Source of the DNA: Octopus bimaculoides
Taxonomy: Eukaryota
DNA: 64,000 nt
Direction: 5' to 3'
NCBI RefSeq assembly: GCF_001194135.2
Contig: NC_069000.1
Location: 18,438,573 to 18,502,572, forward strand
Under the pieces are notes generated by a model. That model ran no database searches, was not told the DNA's origin, and worked only from the letters and a program-made list of their open reading frames with translations. Below, one piece after another: positions 286 to 59,581 of the stretch (its first letter is position 1; each line of letters begins with the position of its first letter). A program made the translations under genes and the position numbers.

Positions 286-1080
286 TGCATCCATCTTGAA
301 TAAATTACCACATTCTTCAATGTCTAAAAGCTAAGCTTGGGAAAGTTATTCTAGATCTGGTCTTTTGAGCTCGTCAACTGGATGTAAACATACTGAAGAA
401 GAGGCCAGCAGCTGAAGCAGTACGATGAACTGTATGGGTGGGGAGTGGATGGTAATGAGTCAAATTATTGACAAAAAAACAGTAGTGAGCATACGTAATG
501 GAAAAATTTGAAAAACACAAAGCAAATGGTGTGGAAAAATAAGGAAACACAGAAGGAGTGAATGTCAAGAGAGAAAAGAATGGAAATGGCAAATTTCATA
601 ATAGCTTGTCTGTCATGCTGTACAAGAGTTAAAGAGGGATAAAAGGGTAAAATTTACCCCATGACAAAGATTATCATCATGGCAACAACTGGTGTGAAGA
701 GAAAATCATCATCATTTAATGTCTGTTTTCTATGCTGGCATGGGTTGGGTAGTTTGACAGGAATTGGCCAAGTCAGTCCCTCCACAAAGCTTACAATATT
801 CTTGGAATGAAAAGGGCCAGAAGGCAGGTGACCATTGGTTGTGGAGGCAGCAAAGGCTGCTTCAAGTTGACAGCAGATCAGGAGGTGCAAACCCTGGAAG
901 GGGCACTTCTACCAGGGATAGTGCTACCTAGACAAAACTGGGGATTGATTAATCCCAGCTAGGTCATCTGAGTGAGGCCGTCTAATGTTGAGAGACCTAA
1001 AATACCTAACGAACCCAGGAAACATCAAACACAATGTGTCCAGGTGCATTACAGGATGATGTATGGAAAAGCATACTTAC

Positions 1081-1190
1081 TTCCATTGGATACTGTTTTT
1101 TGATTTCTTTTCTATTAACCCGATTCCTTCTAGAACATTTGTAATGTCATATATCCGTCGTTTCTGTCGCACAGCCAATGTGTCTGCAGC
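1081..1190 (-). CDS. E2F4/5: E2F4/5 copy A coding exon 2
   Basis: tgttacag|GCT...TGG AA|gtaagt; same 36 aa as copy B exon 2. Confidence 0.96.
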
Positions 1191-4100
1191 CTGTAACAGA
1201 AATTAAGAAAAGAAGAGTTACAAAAAACTTCAGTCGTATCACTGCTACACCACACCAGACCACACACCAACACCATTATAAACATTAGATATAAGCCAGT
1301 TAGTACCTATGTGGTGGTTGGCTGACTTGCTCCAACTAGCAGTCAAATCACCCACTTCCAAGTTAGAAAAAAAAAAACCCCAGGCAATGTGGCTGAGTTC
1401 CTTTTGAGTGTTGGGTCACATGGATCAAAGTCGCTGAGTTCCTTTCGAATGTTGGGCCTTTGGCATTATGTAGTGCTTGAGAAGAAGACCCATCATGCTG
1501 AGAACAATCGCAGTCGTGGAAGATATCAGTGTCATGCAAATGGTACCTGTGCTGGTGGCGCATAAAGCACCCATTACACTCTGAGTGGTTGGCATTAGGA
1601 AAGGCATCCAGCCATAGAAAGCCAAGCCAAATTCGACTGGAGTCTGGTACAGCCTTCTAGCTTACCAGCCCTGGTCAAACCGCCCAACCCATGCCAATAT
1701 GGACAATGGCTGTAAAAAAAAAAAAGAGGATGATTATGATGTGGACATGAGTTTCCTGCACATAGGTAAAAGGCATGATGATCACAACTGGAATGTATTT
1801 GATTGATCAGGGCTAAACAATACCACCTTCACATCTGGCAATAGGGGAACTTCAATGTGATAACTAAACCAGCTAGAAAAAGCAACCACATCTTACTTTA
1901 AACCTTTGAAAACCAACCTACCAGAGATTGTCCCTGGCTCTATGACAAATTTACTGTTTTAATGTGATCTAAATTATAATCTTCCATTGAAATTTTATGT
2001 CAGTTTGTTCCAGCCTCCAGCTCAATAATGAGAAAGTTAATTCCACTAAATTCTTTATTTATTTTAAAAATCAACTGAAACAAAAGCGTTATATGTCAAC
2101 AGAAATATGGCAACAAAAGGGTTAATCATACCCCACCCCTCATCTTAAAGGTCAGAGACAATGATCTGAGGTTAAACAAAAACAACAACAAACAACATTA
2201 TAGAACACTGTGATGAACAAGGTCAGCAGATAATGTAGTTGGTTATTGGTCCATAGGCTTTTGATTCAAATCCATGACAGGTATTTTGTCGTGTCTTTCA
2301 ACAAAAAGAATTAAGTTGTCATCAATTCATTTTAAGTTCTAAAATGCCAGAAATAGGCCCATCTTAGAAGAATATTACTTGGTACAGACTGGTGTTAATA
2401 TTTAGAAGAACCCCCTTCCTTCTGACAGTTTAACCCCTTGTCCACTAGCATGAAGTTAATCCCCCTCCTCTCCCGGGGTTAATAGTCCTGCAAGCTGTAT
2501 GGCAACCTCAATAGAGCAGATGGCATGAACAACCTGGACTCCGCTACCCATTCAGTCACATAAATTTGGACAACATACTAGCTGTCTACCAAAATCTGCA
2601 GTCAACATCTCTTGAAAAGGGTTTTATTACCCCAATACATACCCTGTTATTTCCCATAATCTTTTTCTTCTTTCCTTTCCTTCTCTTGCTTCCTACTCTT
2701 TGACTCTAAACCACTCCCACTCTATGCATATTTTGGATCTCACCTTGTGAGATTGGTTCTCTCAACTTTCTCTATATTTTGTTCTTTATTATTCTTTGCT
2801 ATTGACTTTTCTATTCAGTTGGACTCACCATTGTGTTGTGGCTGATTTAGGAATTTCATGCAGCAATGTAAACTTCATTAAAGTAATCTTAGCCTGATGA
2901 TTAGCTATACTGAAGAAAGTTCATTGTGCAACACTTGCATGAGCTTCAACTAGTTAAGAAATGCATATAGCTTACATTTTACCTATTCCACTCTTTCAGT
3001 TTGGAATTTTAATCCCATTTTTAGCACTATTAGTTGCTAACAGTGTATAGAAACTATCTGCTTGACAATTTTTTTTTACAATTTCAGTTTGGGAAAATGC
3101 ATGTAACCCTTGATGCCAATAAATAGTTATTGATTGTGTCTTACCATATACTGTCCATTTTTTCTCAATACTAACCACCTACTGCTTGAAGCTTACAAAT
3201 TTCCTACATTTGGATCCCTGGATCGTATACAGACGCAGACACACACACATGTGTATGTAATTAAATGAATGTCAAATGAACAGGATATTACATAATGAAC
3301 TTCATTAGCTTACAGCTGTTTCTGTTATGAGATACAGTGCACTGAAGGCTAAGTGCTTGTGCATCACCTTATAGCTTCATTGGAGCACTGCATCTTATAA
3401 CAGGAACAGCTGTAAGCTAATGAAATTCATAGCATAATTTCCTCTTTCTTTATTAATTTAATTCCTTATTTATTTAATTATTTAATAGTTGTACTCAACT
3501 AATGCTTTAGTCTGAAGCATATGTATACTGAGTTCTAACACCAGGCTATTAGTATTGCTATGCCTCAGCAAAACATCAAATATATATATATATATGTAAA
3601 AGGTTGAAGAGGAACACATGAGTAGATATATATGGAAAAAAGACAAAGTAGAAAATGTTAAAATACTTTTATAAAGAACATTACAGAACCGGTTTCGATC
3701 CTTGAGATCTTTTCAACAGTAAATATGAATAATAAATTTTTGAAAAATTATTGAAAAATTTAATTTTGGTAAATTTAAAAGAAAAGTCTTTTTAAAGACA
3801 TATTCGTATAGTATGCAGCTGTTACTTGAATACTATACAAATATGTCTTTAAAAAGACTTTTCTTCTAAATTTACCAAAATTTAATTTTTCAATAATTTT
3901 TCAAAAATTTATTATTCATATTTACTGTTGAAAAGATCTGAAGGATGGAAACCGGTTCTGTAATGTTCTTTATAAAAATATTTTAGCATTTTCTACTTTG
4001 TCTTTTTTCCATATATACACACACACTCATATACACATGTATGTGTGTATGTATGTATGAGGCAAAGCTATAAATATAATCAAGTTACAAGTATTAAACG

Positions 4101-4306: not shown

Positions 4307-7300
4307 GAGGGAGGGGCAACTGGCTGTGGTTTGTTCTGAGTTTTATTTTTTTTTTAACAGACAGATTATGATTTTGTTTGGAACCACGTGTAGTAAATAT
4401 TTGCAAGCAACCACACACACGCACTATAACATTGATCTGCTCGTACAGTTTGTGTATGTTGTCATACAATCTTGAATCAGGAAGCTAGTCTCTTGATAAG
4501 GTCAGCAACTTAACACATGGTCGCTTTATCATGTTAGCGTAAACAACCAATTCCAACCCTCAAAACACCCCACCATCTTTAAAAAAAATTGGCTTATATA
4601 GTCCTTGATATGACGGAATGATCACGGATGGAACGCCTTTCCTTATAAGTTGCTGAATCAAGGCTGATTTGAGACTAAACAGTAATTTATTCTGATTTAC
4701 AATGAAATTAAAACTAAAAAAAAAAGATTTTTATGCCTGTTTATCTATCTGGGTCGTTAAAGCAATTACCATCATTTTCTCGGAAAGCCCTGCCGTATAA
4801 TGCTCACGTCGTACCTGCCATCTTAAAATCATATTGCGAATACGAAATATAGTTCTTAAAATTTTTATAACTTATAAAGCACGGAGACCTTATCCATAAG
4901 TCCTATAAATCTTAGGGGCCCAACTTTAATCAATGTATGTTATGTCTGGTAGTCAATAAAATAAATATTATAAGCCCCACTACATTGATTTATGCAGGAG
5001 CCTAATGCAGCTAAGACGGCCTTAATTATGATAAATGCTAAACATGATTTTGTTGTGGAATTATTTCTGTGTATTTGTAGAAGTTACCCGATAAAAAATG
5101 AATTTATTTTACTGTTTTATATAACAATTACCGATTTTTTTTTTAATGAAGTATACTGTATTAAATGGGCAATGAAAAATATCTAAAAACTGTTGTTACA
5201 CGGTGTCGAATGGATATAACGTCACAAACGGAAAAAAAAATCCCACAATTTGAATTTTAATAAAGTCCCATTTTACTTCCTGACACAAATATCTTGTTAC
5301 TAATCAATGATTTGACAATACAGTATGATAACACAATATAATGGTCTTAATAGTATGTGGGAAATAATATAATGTTTTATTCTATAAAATAATATTTGAA
5401 GATAATGTGCTTCAACTGAAACTTATTCTTGTGAATTTTTTTCCCCACTAGATTCAGTTAGTATACCATGGTGATTTCTCTTACATTTCTTATTATAAAT
5501 CGAGATATGGAAATAATTTCATACGTGTGTGTACTCCGAATGACTTGTGAATGGAACAATGAACGCACCTAAAATAATATCAGAAACAGTTGTAAGTCTA
5601 CGATGCACAAATAAATGTAAAGCCAATTATTTATGCCTTTTCTTGTACACACACACATAGAGAGAGTGGGGGACGACAGATTTCAATGTTTTGTTCTATT
5701 TGTTAAAAGTCTATTGAAAACAGACAGCCTGACGTAGATACACATTTTAAAAATGATACAATGATATGATTGCGCAGTAACCATTTTCTGCAGACATATT
5801 TCCGGAATTAGCGCGCCAAAACGAAGACATTTGATTTTTACCAGTACGTTGTAATTAGCAGAACCATATACACGTTCGCTTCTAGGGGTCAACATCTTGT
5901 ATAGGATTCTGAGAATTATTACTTGCGGTTCGCGCTGAAGAGGAACAGATTTTCTCGGTAAGAGGATTTTAATTCCGAAACCGGTCCGCGAATAACAATG
6001 TTTTAATTTTATGTATGTAATTTTCAGTCTTGCTCGCTTACGGTTTGGTATTTCGCTGAATTTCTTTTGAGAACTATTAGGTCTTAGCAGACACAACATG
6101 TGGTCTATTTCTAGCACATTAAATGTCCACTTTACTGGTCATATATATATATGGGAGAATGTACGAAAAAACAACAACAGACGAGGACAGGTGGTGTAAA
6201 CAACAAAAGGATGTATTAGTATGACGCTCGGGAATACGGAAAGTCTTTAACGTTTCGAGCTACGCTCTTCAACAGAAAGAATACGGAGACAAGGAGAAAA
6301 ACACGGAGAAAAAAAATTGAATAGTGTTCAGTCAACGGTCAATCATATATATATAAGATCCCCTTCAATCGTGAATGACCATGTGATGCACCTAGAATGT
6401 TCCCCTCCGAGGTACAAGTCCGGGCAAGGTTGTTCATAAAAGACCAGTAGTCGCCCTTGCATACTTGCCTCTCCTCTCTGTGCCACTGATGTTATTCAAG
6501 GGAAACGAAAAGGCCGATACAGCTTGGCACCAGTGACGTCGCAACTCGTTTCTACAGCTGAGTGAACTGGAGCAACATGAAATAAAGTATCTTGCACAAG
6601 AGCACAACACGACAAACAGCTCAGTCCGGGAATCGAACTCACTGCCTTCATGATTGTGAGCCCGACGCTCGAACTACTGAGCCATGCCCCTTCACATAAC
6701 ATTTAGATAAATCATTAATTTATAACAAAAGTGTTAGATGTGTCGAAGTGTAGTAACGAAGTAAGAACAGTCAAAACTGTTTTCTTTGATGTTATCAACT
6801 CTAAGGATTNNNNNNNNNNNNNNNNNNNNNNNNNNNNNNNNNNNNNNNNNNNNNNNNNNNNNNNNNNNNNNNNNNNNNNNNNNNNNNNNNNNNNNNNNNN
6901 NNNNNNNNNNNNNNNNNNNNNNNNNNNNNNNNNNNNNNNNNNNNNNNNNNNNNNNNNNNNNNNNNNNNNNNNNNNNNNNNNNNNNNNNNNNNNNNNNNNN
7001 NNNNNNNNNNNNNNNNNNNNNNNNNNNNNNNNNNNNNNNNNNNNNNNNNNNNNNNNNNNNNNNNNNNNNNNNNNNNNNNNNNNNNNNNNNNNNNNNNNNN
7101 NNNNNNNNNNNNNNNNNNNNNNNNNNNNNNNNNNNNNNNNNNNNNNNNNNNNNNNNNNNNNNNNNNNNNNNNNNNNNNNNNNNNNNNNNNNNNNNNNNNN
7201 NNNNNNNNNNNNNNNNNNNNNNNNNNNNNNNNNNNNNNNNNNNNNNNNNNNNNNNNNNNNNNNNNNNNNNNNNNNNNNNNNNNNNNNNNNNNNNNNNNNN

Positions 7301-9208
7301 NNNNNNNNNNNNNNNNNNNNNNNNNNNNNNGGAATCCTATGATGGATATCTCTTATGTGTTTAAATGTACATTGCATTTATATATATATATATATGAAAA
7401 ATAAAAACATGGCAAATGTTTTTATTGTTCATTCCCTTCGAAATTTATCCCTAATAGGGGTTGGGATTTTAGCTGTTCCTTCTAGCGTGCAAGGAATCCT
7501 ATGATGGATATCTCTTATGTGTTTAAATGTACATTGCATTTATATATATATATATATGAGAGAGAGAGAAATTAAACTCTACACTAGTATTCTGTATTGA
7601 GTATTACATATGAAAGCAATCCACTTCGACTGAACATATATCAGGTCATCCTATAAGTAATGTCCGGATTTTAATAAGGAAAACAAGTGATCAAATCTTA
7701 CATTTAAATGAAACTTAATTATCAATATAGTTTCCATGATTATCCATGACGTCTTTTCATGTACTCGTAAGGTCTTTAATCCCAATAGTGAAAAACCTTT
7801 TCAGCTTCGAAGAGAAGTACTCTGAAAGGTTAGTTTCGACTTCTTTCAAGAGTTAACTCATCCAAATGATTCTGTAAACTATGGAACAAATGGTAATTAG
7901 AAGGAGCAAGGTCTGGGGAATAAGGCAGACGAGCAATTTTCTCCAAGTCAAGTTCCTCGATCTTCTCTGATGTGATCTTTGCAGTGTGGGGTCTTGCATT
8001 GCTCTGATGAAACACCACTCCCTTTCGATTCACTAAAGCTGGCCTTTTTTTCTTCAAAGCAGCGTTCAATTACTCTAATTGCTGACAGTAGACTTGAACA
8101 TTGATTGTTGCATTAGTTGGCAGCAACTCAAAGTGGATGACTCCTTTGCAATCCCACCAAACAGAGAGAAGGACCTTCTTCGCATGGAGTTCTCTTTTCG
8201 ATTGTGGTTGGGCCTTTTTTCCTTCACCAAGCCAATGGGTACAACACTTAACATTTTTTTCTCACAGGTCACCAGTCTGTTCAAAAAGGGCGAGATTAGT
8301 TCACGAGAACGAAAAGAAGAGATGCCACTCGGGATTTGCAGTTGGGTTCAGACAAATCACGAGGCACCCATTTCCCGAGTTTTAGGACCTTTCCACACCG
8401 TTGAAGATAGCAGTGAACAGTTGTATGGCTTGAACAAAGCTTGCTTGCCAATTCTTCAACTGAAACTGCATGATCTTTTCCAAGTTCTGCCAAAAGGAGC
8501 TTGTCATCAAACTCAATTGAACGTCCTATTCGGATCTCATGTTCAAGGCTGAAATCTCCACTTCTAAATTTTACAAACCCTCTTCTGGAAGGTCTTTCAT
8601 TCTGGCATTCTTCTCCATAAGCTGAGTGAATATTTCGAGTCACTTCAGTTACAGAGTTCCCTTTCTTTAAACTCATAAAGCATTATGTGCCTCAAATGTT
8701 CCTTAGACACTTCCATGTTTAAAGAGCTATAATTAGTGAAATTTCAATTAGATTATGCTGCAAAATGAAATTTAATTAGTTTAAATATGTCCAAATACAT
8801 ATTTATACTCCTCAGTATATCGCGAGTTTCTGCGGCCGATGGGTATTTATATTTTTTAGATTTTAATTATTTCTGTGGTAAAATAAGCATTTTCACGCCT
8901 AAAAATTAATAAATAAAAATACAATACAGTGCTGCATTGTATAACACATTAATTAAAATATATTAAAAGAAAATACGTAGTGTACCATAGATGAGTTAAC
9001 AAAGAATCGTACATACTGTATGGAAAACGAAACTCGGAATGGGAGTGTGTGGTGTTGTTTTGCATTTATAATAAAATAAATATATACAAATTACAAAAAT
9101 AATTTTTAAAAATATACAGTACAGTACTGTTTCTACTTCGCGAATTTTCACCAATTGCAGAGCGTTTTGGAAAATAATACCCGCGATAGTCGAGGGATTA
9201 CTCTGTGT

Positions 9209-9257
<49 letters not shown>

Positions 9258-9492
9258 CCCGCGCGCACGCACACATACTTACCTCCCTCTTGCACTCTCC
9301 TGTCTTAGAAAGAACTTTTCCTCCATCCCTTCCCCTTCCAGTCCTTCCACAATATAACCTCGTGGACATCGGTGGCGATTTTTTTTTTCCTCCGTTTTTC
9401 CCTTCTTTGGACTTTCCTTGTTTCCGACGAAGAGCTCCGCTCGAAACGTCATATTCTCTCTCTTTCCTTTCCCGAGCGTCTANNNNNNNNNN

Positions 9493-11634: not shown

Positions 11635-14600
11635 NNNNNNNNNNNNNNNNNNNNNNNNNNNNNNNNNNNNNNNNNNNNNNNNNNNNNNNNNNNNNNNNNN
11701 NNNNNNNNNNNNNNNNNNNNNNNNNNNNNNNNNNNNNNNNNNNNNNNNNNNNNNNNNNNNNNNNNNNNNNNNNNNNNNNNNNNNNNNNNNNNNNNNNNNN
11801 NNNNNNNNNNNNNNNNNNNNNNNNNNNNNNNNNNNNNNNNNNNNNNNNNNNNNNNNNNNNNNNNNNNNNNNNNNNNNNNNNNNNNNNNNNNNNNNNNNNN
11901 NNNNNNNNNNNNNNNNNNNNNNNNNNNNNNNNNNNNNNNNNNNNNNNNNNNNNNNNNNNNNNNNNNNNNNNNNNNNNNNNNNNNNNNNNNNNNNNNNNNN
12001 NNNNNNNNNNNNNNNNNNNNNNNNNNNNNNNNNNNNNNNNNNNNNNNNNNNNNNNNNNNNNNNNNNNNNNNNNNNNNNNNNNNNNNNNNNNNNNNNNNNN
12101 NNNNNNNNNNNNNNNNNNNNNNNNNNNNNNNNNNNNNNNNNNNNNNNNNNNNNNNNNNNNNNNNNNNNNNNNNNNNNNNNNNNNNNNNNNNNNNNNNNNN
12201 NNNNNNNNNNNNNNNNNNNNNNNNNNNNNNNNNNNNNNNNNNNNNNNNNNNNNNNNNNNNNNNNNNNNNNNNNNNNNNNNNNNNNNNNNNTATATATGTA
12301 TGTATGTTTGTGTGTCTGTGTTTGTCCCCCCACCATCACTTGACAGCCGATGCTGGTGTGTTTACGTCCCCGTAATTTAGCGGTTCGGCAAAAGAGACCG
12401 ATAGAATAAGTACTAGGCTTCCAAAGAATAAGTCCTGGGGTTGATTTGCTCGACTAAAGGCGGTGCTCCAGCATGGCCGCAGTCAAATGACTGAAACAAG
12501 TAAAAAAAAAAAAAGAGTATATATATATATATATATATTACACATACACGTATATTCTATGGATAGGAAGTTATGATGACACACTGACACTCAACTCTGG
12601 CTGCACAGTTCCTTATAGCAGAAACAGTTGTAAGCTAATGAAGGTAATGACGTAACTCTAGTTCTTATATCATTCATACAGACAACCACACATATACACA
12701 CACTAGCACCTCATGGTGACCCTACAAAGGGCCCAGCAATTCAAGTTGACAGCAGCATGGTAGCTAAATCAATTAACGACATGAAGACAGGGAAAGCTAA
12801 AGTATCATCAGAGATGTTTGAAATAGCTGCTGAGGTGGTACACATGATTATCACTAAAATAGTTAAATAATTTATACAGGCGCAGGAGTGGCTGTGTGGT
12901 AAGTAGCTTGCTTACCAACCACATGGTTCTGGGCTCATTCCCACTGTGTGGCACCTTGGGCAAGTGTCTTCTACTATAGCCTCGGGCCGACCAAAGCCTT
13001 GTGAGTGGATTTGGTAGACGGAAACTGAAAGAAGCCCGTCGTATATATGTATATGTATATGTGTGTATGTTTGTGTGTCTGTGTTTGTCCCCCCAACATC
13101 GCTTGACAACCGATGCTGGTGTGTTTATATCCCCGTAACTTAGCGGTTCGGCAAAACAGACCGATAGAATAAGTACTAGGCTTCTAAAGAATAAGTCCTG
13201 GGGTCGATTTGCTCGACTAAAGGCGGTGCTCCATCTTGGCCACAGTCAAATGACTGAAACAAGTAAAAGAGGAAGATGTCACACCCAATGATTTGCGTAA
13301 TAGTATTCGTCGTAAATTGCAAAAGGGTAAAGGAGATACTTTGGAGAGAAGAAACAGAAGGAGACTCAAACTACTGAATCAGATTATGAAGGTGATGCAG
13401 AGAGTCACAGCACACAAGTGATCTGTAACAAAGTAGACCTAGCAGAGATGCAGTTTGACTCTGGGCCCAGAAGAGGTACCACAGATGCAATATTACTAGT
13501 GAGAGAACTACAAGAGAGACTTAGAAAAGGTATTTCACAGGGTACCACATTCAGCAATCTGGTGGTCACAAAGTAAACTACATGTAGAATAGTGGCTTGT
13601 GAAAACTGTACAAACTATATACAAACATGCAACTGTTAGCATATAACAAATCCTCATTCAGATCTCATCCCAATGCTGGATATCCAAGAACGAAATGAAG
13701 GGCAGATTTTTAATCCCATACTCACCCTGGTTCCAAAAAGGTATAATATATCTATGTAGAGCAAATGTAGACTGAGACACAGGGGTCCTGGATGGACTGA
13801 CAGAATTTCACGTTTATTATTACAGACGGTCCTACAGAGGAGTTCAAGACTGGTTGTCCATAGGAACCCCTGTATGCTGATGATCTAGTTCTCATAATTG
13901 AATCTATTTGGGAATTACAGAGGAAAGTACAGGCACAGAAGTTAAACCTAGAATTGAGAGGCCTCAGGGTATACTTAGCAAAAAGTGAATAAGAAAGAAG
14001 TCATGACATTGGTATCTTCAAGGAAATGGCCTTCCTCAATATGCATAAAAGGGGGTAGGTGTAAACACCATATGCTATACTCAATGTAAGCTATGGACAT
14101 ACAAGAGGTGTAGTGGAATCACAGGCAAACAAAGAGAAAATAAGTTTCATATATGACTGATGCACTAAGAGCAGTATGTGTTATGAGCACAGCAAAAAAC
14201 AGATTCTCTTATATACCCAGTTGGCTCACTAGAAGTAGCTTTTGTTACCTAGATGTAATTAGCAGGAGAGGTACTTAACTAAAAGTATAGTAACCAGGGT
14301 AAGAACCAGTTGGGAAAAATTCAGGAAGCCTCTACTGGTGCTGGCAACAAGTATTTTCCTTTAAAGTGAAAAGTAGATTGTATGATGAATGAATTAGAAC
14401 TGTGATGCTGCATGGTAGTGAGATATGGGTCTTAAATACACAAAACATGAAAAGAGCTGCAGAGAAATGAAGCTAGCATGCTCCGTTGGATGTGAAGTGT
14501 AATTGTGCCTGAACAACAAAGTGCAAATTTGTTGAGAGCAAAACTGGGCATGAGACATGAGAGGAATCCAATGATGTGTGCAAGAAAGAAGACTACACAG

Positions 14601-18817: not shown

Positions 18818-19087
18818 CTTACTCATACACTACAAACATAGACAGCCTCGCACATTTTCATATAGATCGACACACAAAATCATTAAACATAATGCATCAG
18901 TGTACGCACTCATAAACACACACATATGTGTATATGCGTGTTACATATATATAAATTGTTAACTCACCACTTTCAAATCAAGTACTCCATCTTTGGCTTC
19001 CTGTAATAAAGATACGAATTTGGTGGTGAGAAGTCCAAGACTCTTCTCGTGTCGACTGGGTGTGGTGTGATCGGTTGCAGCCATCAT
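1081..19087 (-). CDS. E2F4/5: E2F4/5-family transcription factor, copy A (5' part; exons 1-2 only, continues beyond position 1)
   Basis: Exon 1 19087-18968 and exon 2 1190-1081 join in phase 0 across a 17.8-kb GT-AG intron to give [76 protein letters not shown]. Confidence 0.93.
1380..1745 (+). mobile_element. SINE-like repeat, (GAT)n-tailed family
   Basis: Contains aaaagcaccca...aggaagggcatccagcc...ccaacccatgcca; related copies at about 9690-9880, 21660-21770, 23150-23735, 35710-35945, 36650-36830, 40512-40592, 46550-46745, 49985-50230 and 51990-52130. Confidence 0.75.
3296..3430. repeat. Short foldback element
   Basis: ttcattagcttacagctgtt...aacagctgtaagctaatgaa inverted arms of about 50 bp. 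Confidence 0.75.
3627..4017. repeat. Near-perfect 391-bp palindrome (188-bp arms, 15-nt loop)
   Basis: 3627-3814 is the reverse complement of 3830-4017 with few mismatches; loop gcagctgttacttga. Confidence 0.95.
5771..5821 (-). promoter_or_regulatory. E2F + ETS motif pair inside intron 1 of copy A
   Basis: TTTTGGCGCGC (minus, 5811-5821) next to palindromic TTCCGGAA (5800-5807) in a locally CpG-rich, repeat-free stretch. Confidence 0.4.
6140..6345 (-). mobile_element. (TA)n-flanked Penelope-type repeat with minimal hammerhead-like motif
   Basis: Minus strand TCTTT-CTGTTGA-A-GAGCgtaGCTC-GAAACGT-T-AAAGA. A related copy in the opposite orientation at about 9380-9480 shares gaagagc..gctcgaaacgt and cccgagcgtc. 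Confidence 0.5.
6358..6695 (-). mobile_element. tRNA-derived SINE
   Basis: Minus-strand head with A-box-like tggctcagtag and B-box-like gagttcgattcc. Confidence 0.7.
7639..8700 (-). mobile_element. Decayed Tc1/mariner transposon (frameshifted transposase)
   Basis: ORFs 8676-8296 (HTH region, LGKWVP), 8284-8075 (RLVTCEK, decayed xVTGDEKW) and 8069-7830 ([21 protein letters not shown]); terminal repeat caggtcatcctataagtaatg at about 7641. 5' boundary uncertain. Confidence 0.92.
8805..9205. mobile_element. Tigger/pogo-like MITE (degenerate)
   Basis: Right end cgcgatagtcgagggattact with a partially matching left end ctcctcagtatatcgcg. Confidence 0.45.
10975..11251. mobile_element. hAT (Charlie-like) MITE, 277 bp
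   Basis: TIRs CAGGGGTTTTTCAAACT / AGTTTGAAAACCCCTG; perfect 8-bp TSD GTTTAGCT (10967-10974, 11252-11259). Confidence 0.92.
12291..12515 (+). mobile_element. SINE 3' half (5' part in gap)
   Basis: Near-identical to 13050-13270. Confidence 0.85.
12879..13270 (+). mobile_element. Full-length tRNA-derived SINE (octopus OK-like)
   Basis: gcaggagtggctgtgtggtaag...(TA/TG)n...aaatgactgaaacaagtaaaaga. Other copies: about 20100-20450(-), 23020-23150(-), 24635-24750(+), 26845-27160(+), 34330-34706(-), 37785-38228(-), 42150-42300(-), 43930-44095(-), 50800-51099(-). Confidence 0.88.
14601..14992 (-). mobile_element. tRNA-derived SINE (octopus OR-like), young copy
   Basis: Head TGGCCCAGTGG (A box) and GGTTTCGATTCC (B box), (CAA)n tail; a related older copy at about 48370-48655(+). 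Confidence 0.85.
15760..16930 (+). mobile_element. Second decayed RTE-like LINE fragment
   Basis: Remnants of FVDF..FDK, VRQ(G/S)C, RFA(D)DI and a C-terminal GR-K-W-DD-like segment; heavily disrupted. Confidence 0.7.
17147..17557. mobile_element. Inverted-repeat-bounded element (MITE, family undetermined)
   Basis: ttaaagcggcgtcaattaa / ttaattgacgccgctttaa plus about 15 bp of further imperfect IR; no clear TSD. Confidence 0.65.
18968..19087 (-). CDS. E2F4/5: E2F4/5 copy A coding exon 1
   Basis: 40 codons; [30 protein letters not shown] is identical to the recalled vertebrate E2F4 segment; donor GTG|gtgagt. Confidence 0.95.
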
Positions 19088-19382
19088 TCAGCAAAAGCAC
19101 CAACCGTTTGGTTGGACGAATAAAACAGCACACTGGGTACAGCAACAACCAACACCACCACTACCTCCGCCACCATCGTAACACCACTATATTCTCCTCC
19201 TCCTCCTCTCTGGCTGCTGTTGTTCCTTCTCCTTCTTATCTTCCTCCCTCCTCTTTCTGCTTCTTTCGCTTATGCTGATTGTTACTGCTGCTATTGCTGG
19301 ATACTTACTCCAGCACACCTTGCGGTGTTTATACACCTTGTAGAACTGACACACAAACACATACGAGATGTGTAGCATACTG

Positions 19383-22956: not shown

Positions 22957-23154
22957 ATAAAACTCCGGACATTGAACATATAACAGTCGTCTGCTATAGG
23001 TGTCACTACACATGTATCTGTTAGGTTTCTTTCAATTGCTGTTCACCAAACTCATTTGCTCTGTCCAGTGCTATAATAGAAAACACTTGTTCAAGGTGCC
23101 ACAGTTGAATTAAACTCAACTGGTTGGGAAGCAAACTTCTTAACCACGGCACAT

Positions 23155-23560
23155 AAAATATACCATTTGAGTATGGTCGTTGCTAGTGCTGCCTGACTGG
23201 CTCCTGTGCCAGTGGTATGTAAAAAGCACCATTCGAGCATGGTAGTTTCCAGTACTGCTTGAGTGGCTTCCATGCTGGTGACACATAAAAAGCAACATTC
23301 GAGCATGGTCATTTCCCAGTGCCGCCTGACTGGCTCCCGTGCCAGCAGCACGTAAACAGCAGCATTCGAATATGGTTGTTGCCAGTACCACCTGATTGGC
23401 CCCATGCTGGTGGCATGTAAAAAGCACCATTCGAGTGTGGTTATTGCCAGTGCCGCATGACTAGCCCCTGTGCCAGTGACGTGTAAAAAGCACTATTCGA
23501 GCATGGTCAATGCCAGTACCATCTGACTTGACCCCATGCCAGTGACACATAAAAAGCACC
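23155..23560 (+). repeat. About 66-bp tandem array (6 units plus a partial) inside a SINE-like repeat
   Basis: attcgag-like anchors at 23165, 23231, 23297, 23364, 23429 and 23495. Confidence 0.9.
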
Positions 23561-23894
23561 CACTACACTCTCAGAGTGGTTGGCGTTAGGAAGGGCATCC
23601 AACTGTAGAAACCTTGACAGATCAGATTGGAGCCTGGTGCAGCCTCCTGACTTGCCAGTCCTCAGTCAAACCATCCAACCCATGCTAGCATGGACATGGA
23701 AAGTGGATGTTAAACGACGACAACGATGATGATGATACATATATATATATATCAATTTTGTTTTTCATCCTTTTGTAGGGGATAAAACAAGTACCAGTTG
23801 AGTACCAGGATCAATGTAATTAACTTCACCCCACTCCTTAAACTGCTGGCCTTGTGCCAAAATTTGAAATTATCATCATCATCATTATTATTTG

Positions 23895-31568: not shown

Positions 31569-58890
<27,322 letters not shown>

Positions 58891-59581
58891 GTGTAACTGC
58901 AGGCGAAAGCACCACGATAAATTGGGTTGTCGGCGCACAGTACGCTGGGTAGATCCTCTTTATCTCGTTTTCGTCCCTACCTTTTTTTTTTTTTCTTTCA
59001 CTAATATGAGCTGTTGCAATTTTTTGCTTCTTCTCTTAACCCTCACTTTTCTTTATTTGCTTCTTATTTCTTTTTCCTTTTACTTATTCCTCCATCTTTT
59101 CTTCTCTTTCTTTTCCCAGTCGTTGTTGTCTTTCATTTCGCCTTCATCCTCACTCCCATTATCACCTCTCTCTCTCTCACTTTTTGTTTTCCTTTCCTGC
59201 TCTCATTCTTTCTTTCACTCTTACTCTTTTATTTTATTCCCTCCTTCTTTTACTTATAATTGCTTTTTTCACTCTTCCTCCTCCTCGTACGTCATCTCCC
59301 CTTCGTTCCCACTCCAGTGATTTTTAAGTTTGTCACCTTTTGTTTGCCTTTCTTCCTTTCATTTTTCTCTCACACATATTCCTCCCTTTTTACACTACTT
59401 TTTTCTCGTCGTTATCGTTCTTCTTCCTTTTCTCTACTGTCATAATTCCTCTTTCTTTCTTTTTCTCTCTCCCTATCACACTCTTTATCTCATGCTCCTC
59501 CTCTTTTTTGTTATTTTTTAACTCATCTTTCTTTCTATTATTACCGCCGGTTCTCCCCCTCTTTCTTTCATTCATACTTAC

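Follow-up and report, generated by a model that had tools for sequence, protein, structure and literature searches.

A short exon 2 tract of tandem E2F4/5 paralogs in octopods has very probably been homogenised by recurrent interlocus gene conversion

The window, a stretch of 64,000 nucleotides with 100% identity to Octopus bimaculoides chromosome CM046620.1, contains two E2F4/5-type genes arranged in tandem, head-to-tail, both on the minus strand (Table 1). Gene B is complete in the window and gene A is represented by exons 1 and 2 only. Exons 3-9 of gene B (span 31569..40412) showed AG/GT at every junction, and its coding sequence translated exactly to the annotated 368-aa protein (P0123), a product for which exon 2 is required. 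Gene A exons were mapped from O. vulgaris; exon 5 of the O. bimaculoides gene reaches into an N gap. An intronless copy of gene A with exons 2-9 joined is present in the O. bimaculoides assembly (scaffold LGKD02062228.1) and confirmed the exon 2/exon 3 splice junction of this gene. Each gene has one copy of exon 2, preceded by an intron of 16-18 kb. In gene A, this exon encodes 36 residues plus K, which belong to the winged-helix DNA-binding domain and include the RRIYD motif.

Table 1. Genes, exons and similarity tracts in the O. bimaculoides window (positions in the window).
Feature	Position	Strand	Basis or remark
Gene A, conserved E2F4/5 ortholog (XP_014780551.1)		-	
Gene B, diverged paralog (XP_014780553.1)		-	
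Candidate conversion tract, gene A copy	1075..1233	-	~43 nt of intron 1 (acceptor side), exon 2 and donor GTAAGT; BLAST A vs B
Gene A exon 2, 110 nt	1081..1190	-	AG/GT splice sites and translation
Candidate conversion tract, gene B copy	42327..42483	-	BLAST and alignments
Gene B exon 2, 110 nt	42333..42442	-	2 synonymous changes vs gene A copy
Gene A exon 1	18968..19087	-	encodes 40 residues
Gene B exon 1	58771..58890	-	encodes 40 residues; 34/120 nt differ vs A
Gene B exon 3	40412-40255	-	mapped from O. vulgaris ortholog
Gene B exon 4	38939-38824	-	mapped from O. vulgaris ortholog
Gene B exon 5	36484-36260	-	mapped from O. vulgaris ortholog
Gene B exon 6	35314-35221	-	mapped from O. vulgaris ortholog
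Gene B exon 7	34259-34173	-	mapped from O. vulgaris ortholog
Gene B exon 8	32975-32931	-	mapped from O. vulgaris ortholog
Gene B exon 9	31720-31569	-	mapped from O. vulgaris ortholog

Both proteins matched E2F_TDP (PF02319; 92-94 bits, cut-off 25.7), with RRIYD present, as well as E2F_CC-MB (PF16421; 94 and 108 bits, cut-off 33.9), and matches to the E2F4 and E2F5 CC-MB structures 5TUU and 5TUV were obtained. Their nearest named homologs were all E2F4 or E2F5. Residues 9-81 of gene A are identical to the human E2F4 DNA-binding domain (PDB 1CF7) at 71 of 73 positions. Only 10-13 residues precede the DNA-binding domain in the octopus proteins; a cyclin-A-binding N-terminal region is a feature of E2F1-3. 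Near the C-terminus, the sequence ...DDSEGVCD(L/F)FDVPLL contains a putative pocket-protein-binding motif, and a C-terminal EGVCD(L/F)FDV motif, which would be shared with E2F4/E2F5, occurs in both octopus genes. Relative to the E2F4/5 subfamily, copy B is altered in the deeply conserved part of the DNA-binding domain encoded by exon 1, where one 13-residue segment has been changed to another, and also in the dimerisation region.

A first-pass annotation of the window had reported that exon 2 is almost identical between the two genes, while exon 1 is strongly diverged, and all of its counts were reproduced. Exon 1 of A and B differs at 34/120 nt and 10/40 aa, with different codons at 16 of the 30 positions where the amino acid is the same. 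In exon 2, only 2 of the 110 nt differ, and neither change alters the protein (ATT/ATC and ATC/ATT, both Ile codons). As had also been stated, similarity reaches ~40-43 nt into the acceptor-side intron and ends just past the donor, 6-7 nt downstream of the GT in O. bimaculoides; the intron part of the tract has 4 mismatches and one 2-nt indel. A BLAST self-comparison matched 1075-1230 to 42327-42480 (95.5% over 156 nt), and a more sensitive search extended the match to 159 nt at 95%, thereby recovering the previously annotated coordinates (Table 1). Outside the tract, alignment of A and B introns gave 42-50% identity, which is the chance level.

The restriction of this similarity to exon 2 was statistically clear. 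Among codons for the same amino acid, 3/37 differed between A and B in exon 2 (split codon counted), the corresponding count for the remaining exons being 82/175 (Fisher P=4.7e-6), and the longest run of identity between A and B falls in exon 2 (permutation P<5e-5). Exons 3-9 of gene B were 76-82% identical to gene A where alignable, none of them with raised similarity. When the complete loci were compared by BLAST in three species, no further A/B conversion tract overlapping an exon emerged, other exon matches being in the same 76-82% range.

The comparison was extended to O. vulgaris, O. sinensis, Argonauta hians and the cuttlefish Acanthosepion, so that one decapodiform and four octopod species from three lineages were sampled. 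The octopods sampled share the tandem order of B followed by A, with the exon 2 copies 22-59 kb apart, whereas the cuttlefish shows one E2F4/5 gene. B-type proteins were retrieved by protein search only from O. vulgaris/O. sinensis, O. bimaculoides and A. hians. Outside exon 2, comparison of A with B yielded pS values of 0.69-0.81 and dN values of 0.25-0.29. In exon 2, pS was lowest in Argonauta (0.04, with 0/110 nt differing), followed by O. bimaculoides (0.12, 2/110) and O. vulgaris (0.24, 5/110). Between Octopus and Argonauta, 10-15 of the 110 exon 2 nucleotides differ, all synonymously (pS 0.40-0.57), and octopod copies differ from that of Acanthosepion at 12-17/110. Ortholog dN/dS was ~0.04-0.05 for both genes, which shows that both are still under purifying selection.

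Per-exon trees followed the pattern that gene conversion predicts, with exon 2 grouping by species and the other exons by paralog. Exons 1, 3, 4, 5 and 9 singly, as well as all exons other than exon 2 combined, yielded A and B clades (bootstrap 70-100%), each of which contains Octopus and Argonauta. In the exon 2 tree, Argonauta A joined Argonauta B at 100% bootstrap and the Octopus A and B copies were intermixed. Site patterns in O. vulgaris and Argonauta agreed with this topology: exon 2 showed 10 species-type and 0 paralog-type sites, against 18 and 118, respectively, in the other exons (Fisher P=1.5e-8). The sole paralog-type site in the exon 2 column set is the exon 3 base of the split codon. 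The tract is 158-160 bp long in all three genera. Within a genus, its intron part shows 1 mismatch per ~39-44 nt between paralogs (Argonauta; O. vulgaris); between Octopus, Argonauta and Acanthosepion, this part is unalignable.

A neighbour-joining protein tree (290 columns, exon 2 left out) was used to date the duplication. In this tree, in which both octopod branches are long, a clade of A and B excluded the cuttlefish gene with 95% bootstrap support. Sequence comparison thus places the duplication after the octopod/decapodiform split and before the split of Octopus and Argonauta, and on the same basis the paralogs have since diverged to synonymous saturation outside exon 2. Ages can be expressed only relative to this saturation of silent sites. 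Evidently, at least one overwriting of the tract between the copies has taken place in Octopus, and another, very recent one in Argonauta. Of the 'recent or recurrent' conversion proposed in the first-pass annotation, recurrence was borne out, while 'recent' requires qualification for O. bimaculoides, in which divergence within the tract is about equal to neutral divergence between O. bimaculoides and O. vulgaris. The case for a conversion after the split of these two species is thin: one species-pattern site (exon position 42) points to it, ObimA and ObimB group with a bootstrap of 32%, and the four Octopus exon 2 copies form a near-star with 2-5 differences.

Conversion had further been credited with keeping the RRIYD segment the same in both proteins. 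This consequence was not supported. The 37-aa exon 2 peptide is identical in 85 of the 126 metazoan E2F4/5 proteins examined and 100% identical to human E2F4 in PDB 1CF7; because it is conserved across metazoan E2F4/5 in any case, purifying selection alone suffices to keep the segment. Conversion is visible at silent and intronic sites only.

Several other explanations for the exon 2 similarity were considered. Gene B exon 2 lies on a 3.2 kb contig between two N runs (41349-41737 and 44949-45319), as might be expected if assembly of the O. bimaculoides scaffold, which is rich in gaps, had misplaced, collapsed or duplicated the contig of one exon 2 locus. However, 7 positions distinguish the two copies of the tract, the flanks of the two are unrelated, and these unique flanks match their orthologs in the gap-free O. 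vulgaris assembly (ObimA/OvulA 92.4%; ObimB/OvulB 92.6% and 92.2%). The two-locus arrangement is also found in O. sinensis and A. hians, four assemblies in all, and the annotated gene B protein needs exon 2. Misassembly, a possibility raised in the first-pass annotation, is contradicted by the orthologous flanks (~92%) and by the presence of two loci in other assemblies, and was rejected as having virtually no probability. A-to-I editing is common in coleoids, and it is conceivable that the demands of splicing enhancers, of codon usage or of an RNA duplex that serves such editing froze the acceptor flank and the silent positions of exon 2, so that the paralogs never diverged there. Exon 2 is short and sits behind a long intron, and between genera 27-38% of its same-aa codons differ, as compared to 46-47% in other exons (P=0.03-0.38); its silent sites may therefore evolve somewhat more slowly between genera, as a mild component of constraint. 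The first-pass annotation had identified invariance of these sites between distant species as the alternative to conversion, but the Octopus-Argonauta pS of 0.40-0.57 and the differences of 10-15/110 and 12-17/110, all silent within octopods, reflect normal divergence. Moreover, the intron flank of the tract is unalignable between genera, when O. bimaculoides is compared with O. vulgaris the divergence of exon 2 if anything exceeds that of the remaining exons, and RNA folding of the tract was no better than that of shuffled sequences (z = 0.01, -0.92 and +1.85). Nucleotide-level constraint as the cause of the similarity was rejected on the between-genus divergence and the insignificant z-scores, and is considered very improbable.

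Near-identical tract borders in all genera would be simply explained by a single conversion in the common ancestor, and independent, lineage-specific duplications would likewise dispense with recurrence. Such scenarios are highly improbable: grouping of the other exons by paralog across genera and the conserved tandem order indicate that the duplication was single and older than the genera, and a single ancestral conversion predicts A-B distances within species at least as large as the 10-15 differences between genera, whereas 0, 2 and 5 were observed. In addition, ten silent sites, like the intron flank over its whole length, are specific to each genus yet common to both paralogs. Conversion templated by RNA or cDNA, in which a spliced copy would act as donor, could be suspected from the intronless gene A copy and from the tract ending within 6-9 nt of the donor site, but in every species the tract takes in ~40 nt of the intron before exon 2 and, after it, the donor GTAAGT(AGC), neither of which a spliced template can supply. 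This mechanism was rejected because the tract contains intron sequence, and its probability is negligible. Somewhat less remote, but still improbable, is that homogenisation was selected, or driven by a local recombination hotspot, rather than a neutral by-product. Homogenisation of the same ~160-bp island in lineages whose silent sites are saturated outside it would fit this proposal; conservation of the peptide across Metazoa, without a paralog to convert from, argues for conversion without a gain at the protein level. No signature of GC-biased conversion was seen (tract GC 35-38%, window 36.5%), and comparison of RNA folding with shuffles identified no structure or motif in the tract.

Recurrent interlocus (non-allelic) gene conversion between the tandem, same-strand E2F4/5 paralogs, confined to an island of ~160 bp, is therefore very probably the correct explanation. 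The old duplication with a ~160 bp conversion tract, as put forward in the first-pass annotation, is supported by the per-exon trees and by the divergence of exon 2 between genera, and our verdict is that at least two independent conversion events are required. Overwriting extends from exon 2 into the neighbouring introns, by ~40 nt on the upstream side and 6-9 nt on the downstream side. A possible mechanism starts from the 37-residue segment encoded by exon 2, which would tolerate no amino-acid change across animals, leaving only ~25 silent sites to drift. This protein constraint would keep the copies alike enough that homologous repair could still act across the 22-59 kb separating the two loci. 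Every conversion would then reset the silent sites and drag along a short adjoining stretch of intron, past which there would be no homology into which tracts could extend. The loss of homology past the tract would account for the borders being almost identical in three genera. Conversion would thus be a neutral by-product of constraint at the protein level, not the keeper of RRIYD identity. We infer both that homology has been kept by constraint and that one island with fixed borders has persisted. A stronger version of recurrent conversion, which we regard as unlikely, holds that the island has been a single, long-lived unit of concerted evolution whose borders were in place before Octopus and Argonauta diverged and have not changed since, maybe aided by a local hotspot or by selection for a homogeneous recognition exon. 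If so, octopod repair would convert efficiently on at most 160 bp of homology across 22-59 kb, and the borders would have been held over a span in which silent sites elsewhere became saturated.

Interlocus conversion between tandem paralogs is well known from the human gamma-globin genes HBG1/HBG2, the red/green opsins and RHD/RHCE. It has also been described for human segmental duplications (PMC3790853) and for HMA4 copies of Arabidopsis halleri, in which it results in mosaic divergence of tandem paralogs (bioRxiv 10.1101/2025.10.29.685298). As in known cases, the octopod paralogs are in tandem, in the same orientation and tens of kb apart; a short segment is concerted at silent and flanking non-coding sites while the remainder diverges, and the tree of that segment follows species while that of the remainder follows paralogs. 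In contrast to those cases, the octopod paralogs are saturated at silent sites, indicating an old duplication, the island consists of a single 110-nt exon plus ~50 nt, and the same borders recur in genera with unalignable introns. Exon-level gene conversion in sodium-channel paralogs of Taricha newts is argued to spread adaptive substitutions (PMC8476164). Both systems involve conversion limited to a part of the gene in old paralogs and detected across species; in octopods, however, conversion of E2F genes changes no amino acid and looks neutral.

The literature searched contained nothing relevant on E2F gene conversion or octopus E2F duplication and, to that extent, interlocus conversion has not been reported earlier for the E2F family or for this animal group. 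The process is known and this clean example of it reveals no new mechanism. Its interest lies in a clear and well-delimited case of an old gene pair that evolves in concert at the scale of an exon, in a group in which interlocus conversion has hardly been described. In practice, inclusion of exon 2 would make per-gene dS estimates or whole-gene trees of these octopod paralogs misleading. The analysis also documents an octopod-specific tandem duplication of a repressor-type E2F, and the altered DNA-binding and dimerisation residues of copy B may be of interest to researchers studying the cephalopod cell cycle.

The window matched part of O. bimaculoides chromosome CM046620.1 (assembly GCA_001194135.2) in reverse orientation with 100% identity. 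Two E2F4/5-type genes were identified by tblastn with an E2F4 query and subsequent mapping of annotated orthologs; they lie in head-to-tail order on the minus strand. Gene B was complete within the window, with AG/GT at every junction and a translation exactly equal to XP_014780553.1. Gene A started ~12 kb downstream of gene B; its exons 3-9 lay left of the window and were taken from locus L007. Both products contained an E2F_TDP winged-helix domain and an E2F_CC-MB domain, and residues 9-81 of gene A were identical to the human E2F4 chain (PDB 1CF7) at 71 of 73 positions. Exon 5 of gene A, which lies beyond the window, enters a gap; for this reason XP_014780551.1 has 311 aa, as compared with 348 aa for its O. 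vulgaris ortholog. In gene A intron 3 (L007 23517-23628), the 3' 110 nt of exon 3 (L007 23135-23296) were repeated ~385 bp downstream with 96-99% identity, reflecting either a local duplication or an artefact of the gap-rich O. bimaculoides assembly. The unplaced scaffold LGKD02062228.1 (L009 1509-2266) carried an intronless copy of gene A, from the last 42 nt of exon 2 to exon 9; virtually identical to the genomic exons, it confirmed the gene A splice junctions. This copy, which the annotation lists as XP_052834238.1 ('E2F4-like, partial'), represents either a retrocopy of very young age or contaminating cDNA in the assembly. Two interspersed repeat families, probably SINE-like elements, showed no relation to the exon-2 tract.

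Features of the two E2F4/5-type genes and their surroundings, in window coordinates
Feature	Position	Strand	Basis or remark
Gene B exon 1	58890-58771	-	ortholog mapping
Gene B exon 2	42442-42333	-	ortholog mapping
Gene B exons 3-9	down to 31569	-	ortholog mapping
Gene A exon 1	19087-18968	-	ortholog mapping
Gene A exon 2	1190-1081	-	ortholog mapping
14-nt motif ACCCAGYGTRCTGT	19125-19138, 58937-58950	-	~40-50 nt upstream of start codon, both genes
N runs (six)	6810-7330, 9483-9492, 11635-12290, 41349-41737, 44949-45319, 51100-51333		2,181 N in total
Interspersed repeat family	12291-13272, 34329-34754, 37780-38228, 50796-51099	both	75-94% identity; introns and intergenic space
Interspersed repeat family	1564-1717, 23550-23700, 35756-35945, 46545-46750, 49976-50163	both	75-94% identity; introns and intergenic space
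Tandem repeat, 6-nt period	52214-52329, recurring 55960-56020
Tandem repeat, ~66-nt period	23150-23560

The first-pass annotation had proposed an old duplication in which exon 2 was homogenised by gene conversion, and all of its counts were reproduced. Exon 1 differed between A and B at 34 of 120 nt and 10 of 40 aa, with 16 of the 30 same-amino-acid codons different, whereas exon 2 differed at 2 of 110 nt, both within Ile codons. A BLAST match of 159 nt at 95% identity (window 1075-1233 vs 42327-42483) confirmed the extent of the tract. Before the exon, similarity covered ~40-43 nt of intron, a part with 4 mismatches and a 2-nt indel, and after the exon it stopped 6-7 nt past the donor GT; beyond the tract, the introns aligned at chance level. 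Same-amino-acid codons differed in 3 of 37 cases in exon 2 (the third being the exon-3 base of a split codon) and in 82 of 175 elsewhere (Fisher P=4.7e-6).

A protein search with gene B recovered the A and B paralogs from O. vulgaris and Argonauta hians and just one E2F4_5 gene from the cuttlefish Acanthosepion pharaonis; O. sinensis A was located via a cluster listing. Octopod sampling comprised three lineages. Concatenated exons of the models translated exactly to the annotated proteins. The B-then-A tandem order was common to O. bimaculoides, O. vulgaris, O. sinensis, and A. hians, with exon-2 copies spaced 41, 57, 59, and 22 kb apart, respectively. Without exon 2, Nei-Gojobori estimates for A vs B were saturated at silent sites in each species (pS 0.69-0.81; dN 0.25-0.29). 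An ortholog dN/dS of ~0.04-0.05 indicated that both genes are constrained. For exon 2, A vs B pS was 0.12 in O. bimaculoides, 0.24 in O. vulgaris, and 0.04 in Argonauta (2, 5, and 0 raw differences per 110 nt).

In neighbour-joining trees, built on short alignments, exons 1, 3, 4, 5, and 9 singly and the pooled non-exon-2 sequence grouped by paralog (bootstrap 70-100%), the A and B clades each holding Octopus and Argonauta. Exon 2 behaved as conversion predicts: Argonauta A and B joined with 100% bootstrap, and the Octopus copies were mixed. Four-taxon site patterns, counted with O. vulgaris and Argonauta, gave 10 species-type and 0 paralog-type sites in exon 2 (110 nt), as against 18 and 118 in the other exons (Fisher P=1.5e-8). 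In a protein tree without exon 2 and with nine outgroups, the cuttlefish gene fell outside the A+B clade (95% bootstrap), so the duplication is probably specific to octopods and predates the separation of Octopus from Argonauta.

These comparisons demonstrated that silent and intronic sites were homogenised within the limits of the tract, and that this happened repeatedly in separate lineages. A minimum of two independent conversions is needed, one for each of the Octopus and Argonauta lineages. The Argonauta event is very recent, as only 1 difference was found in 158 nt. The four or five Octopus exon-2 copies were 1-6 nt apart in a near-star pattern, with no site splitting A-types from B-types and one species-specific site (position 42). 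In O. bimaculoides, A-B divergence within the tract was ~0.08 for silent sites and ~10% for the intronic portion, close to the neutral divergence from O. vulgaris (pS 0.07-0.08, introns 7.5%), which places the last Octopus-lineage event around that split. Of the 'recent or recurrent' conversion originally suggested, recurrence thus held, and the O. bimaculoides event was not strictly recent.

The intron part is the most telling detail of the case. In Argonauta, the ~39 nt preceding exon 2 (ATATCATATAATATTGCATCAYATCATATTATATTTCAG) were common to A and B with one mismatch. In Octopus, A and B likewise had the matching ~44 nt (…TTTTTTTAACCCTTCTCTCTTAATTTCTGTTACAG) in common, and the Argonauta, Octopus, and cuttlefish versions were mutually unrelated. 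A conserved splicing element was ruled out, since the piece is genus-specific yet common to paralogs with otherwise unalignable introns. The tract spanned 158-160 bp in each of the three genera, its borders lying at ~-39 to -44 and +6 to +9. Argonauta B intron 1 (L004) contained a 35-nt acceptor-side piece of the tract twice (18911-18945 vs 19093-19127), the second copy lying 182 nt upstream with 2-3 mismatches as a local direct repeat.

Synonymous constraint, under which orthologous exon 2 would be just as invariant at silent sites between distant species, was not borne out: Octopus and Argonauta differed at 10-15 of 110 positions, every one silent, so exon-2 silent sites do change with time. 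Mild silent-site constraint may be a component. The same distances excluded a single ancestral conversion, as within-species A-B distances (0-5) were far below those between orthologs of the two genera. Misassembly of an exon-2 locus could be suspected from the position of B exon 2 on a 3.2 kb contig flanked by N runs; however, the flanks of each O. bimaculoides exon-2 locus were ~92% identical to those of the corresponding ortholog in O. vulgaris, whose assembly is gap-free, and the two-locus structure was found in four assemblies. Conversion from a spliced template was excluded by the intron sequence within the tract, although the intronless gene A copy does exist. An RNA duplex serving, for instance, A-to-I editing was not supported, as tract RNA folded no better than shuffled sequences (z = 0.01, -0.92, +1.85).

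The 37-aa exon-2 peptide was identical in 85 of the 126 E2F4/5 homologs examined and had at most 2 mismatches in all but one, a partial protein. Such invariance would leave only ~25 silent sites free to drift, so that the copies would stay at least ~90% identical and persist as a substrate for homologous repair. Every event would reset the clock and bring along the adjoining ~40 nt of intron; lack of homology in the flanks would prevent tract growth and account for the constant borders. Conversion would then be a by-product of constraint, and the earlier proposal that it keeps the RRIYD segment the same would not be needed. No GC excess was found in the tract, and thus no sign of biased conversion.

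Outside exon 2, copy B (window 58771-58890, minus strand) had replaced residues in parts of the DNA-binding domain, covering 19 positions, that show no change between octopus A and human E2F4. The coiled-coil region of copy B (exons 3-4) showed many changes, and B-specific exon-1 residues were kept between Octopus B and Argonauta B. This pattern of substitutions suggests a stable, altered gene B function rather than decay. The upstream motif ACCCAGYGTRCTGT also occurred in both O. vulgaris genes and in Argonauta A, which suggests that it may have been retained as a promoter or 5'UTR element. The two genes had another short block in common, GGTGCTTTYGC.

Concerted evolution confined to a segment of tandem paralogs is already well known, including in globin, opsin, and RH genes. 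Octopod E2F4/5 resembles in this respect the tandem HMA4 copies of Arabidopsis halleri, which show mosaic divergence (bioRxiv 10.1101/2025.10.29.685298). The literature searched yielded nothing on E2F paralog conversion or an octopod E2F4/5 duplication. Mechanistically the case is unsurprising; the octopod E2F4/5 island is a neat, unusually well bounded, and old example from a little-studied clade.
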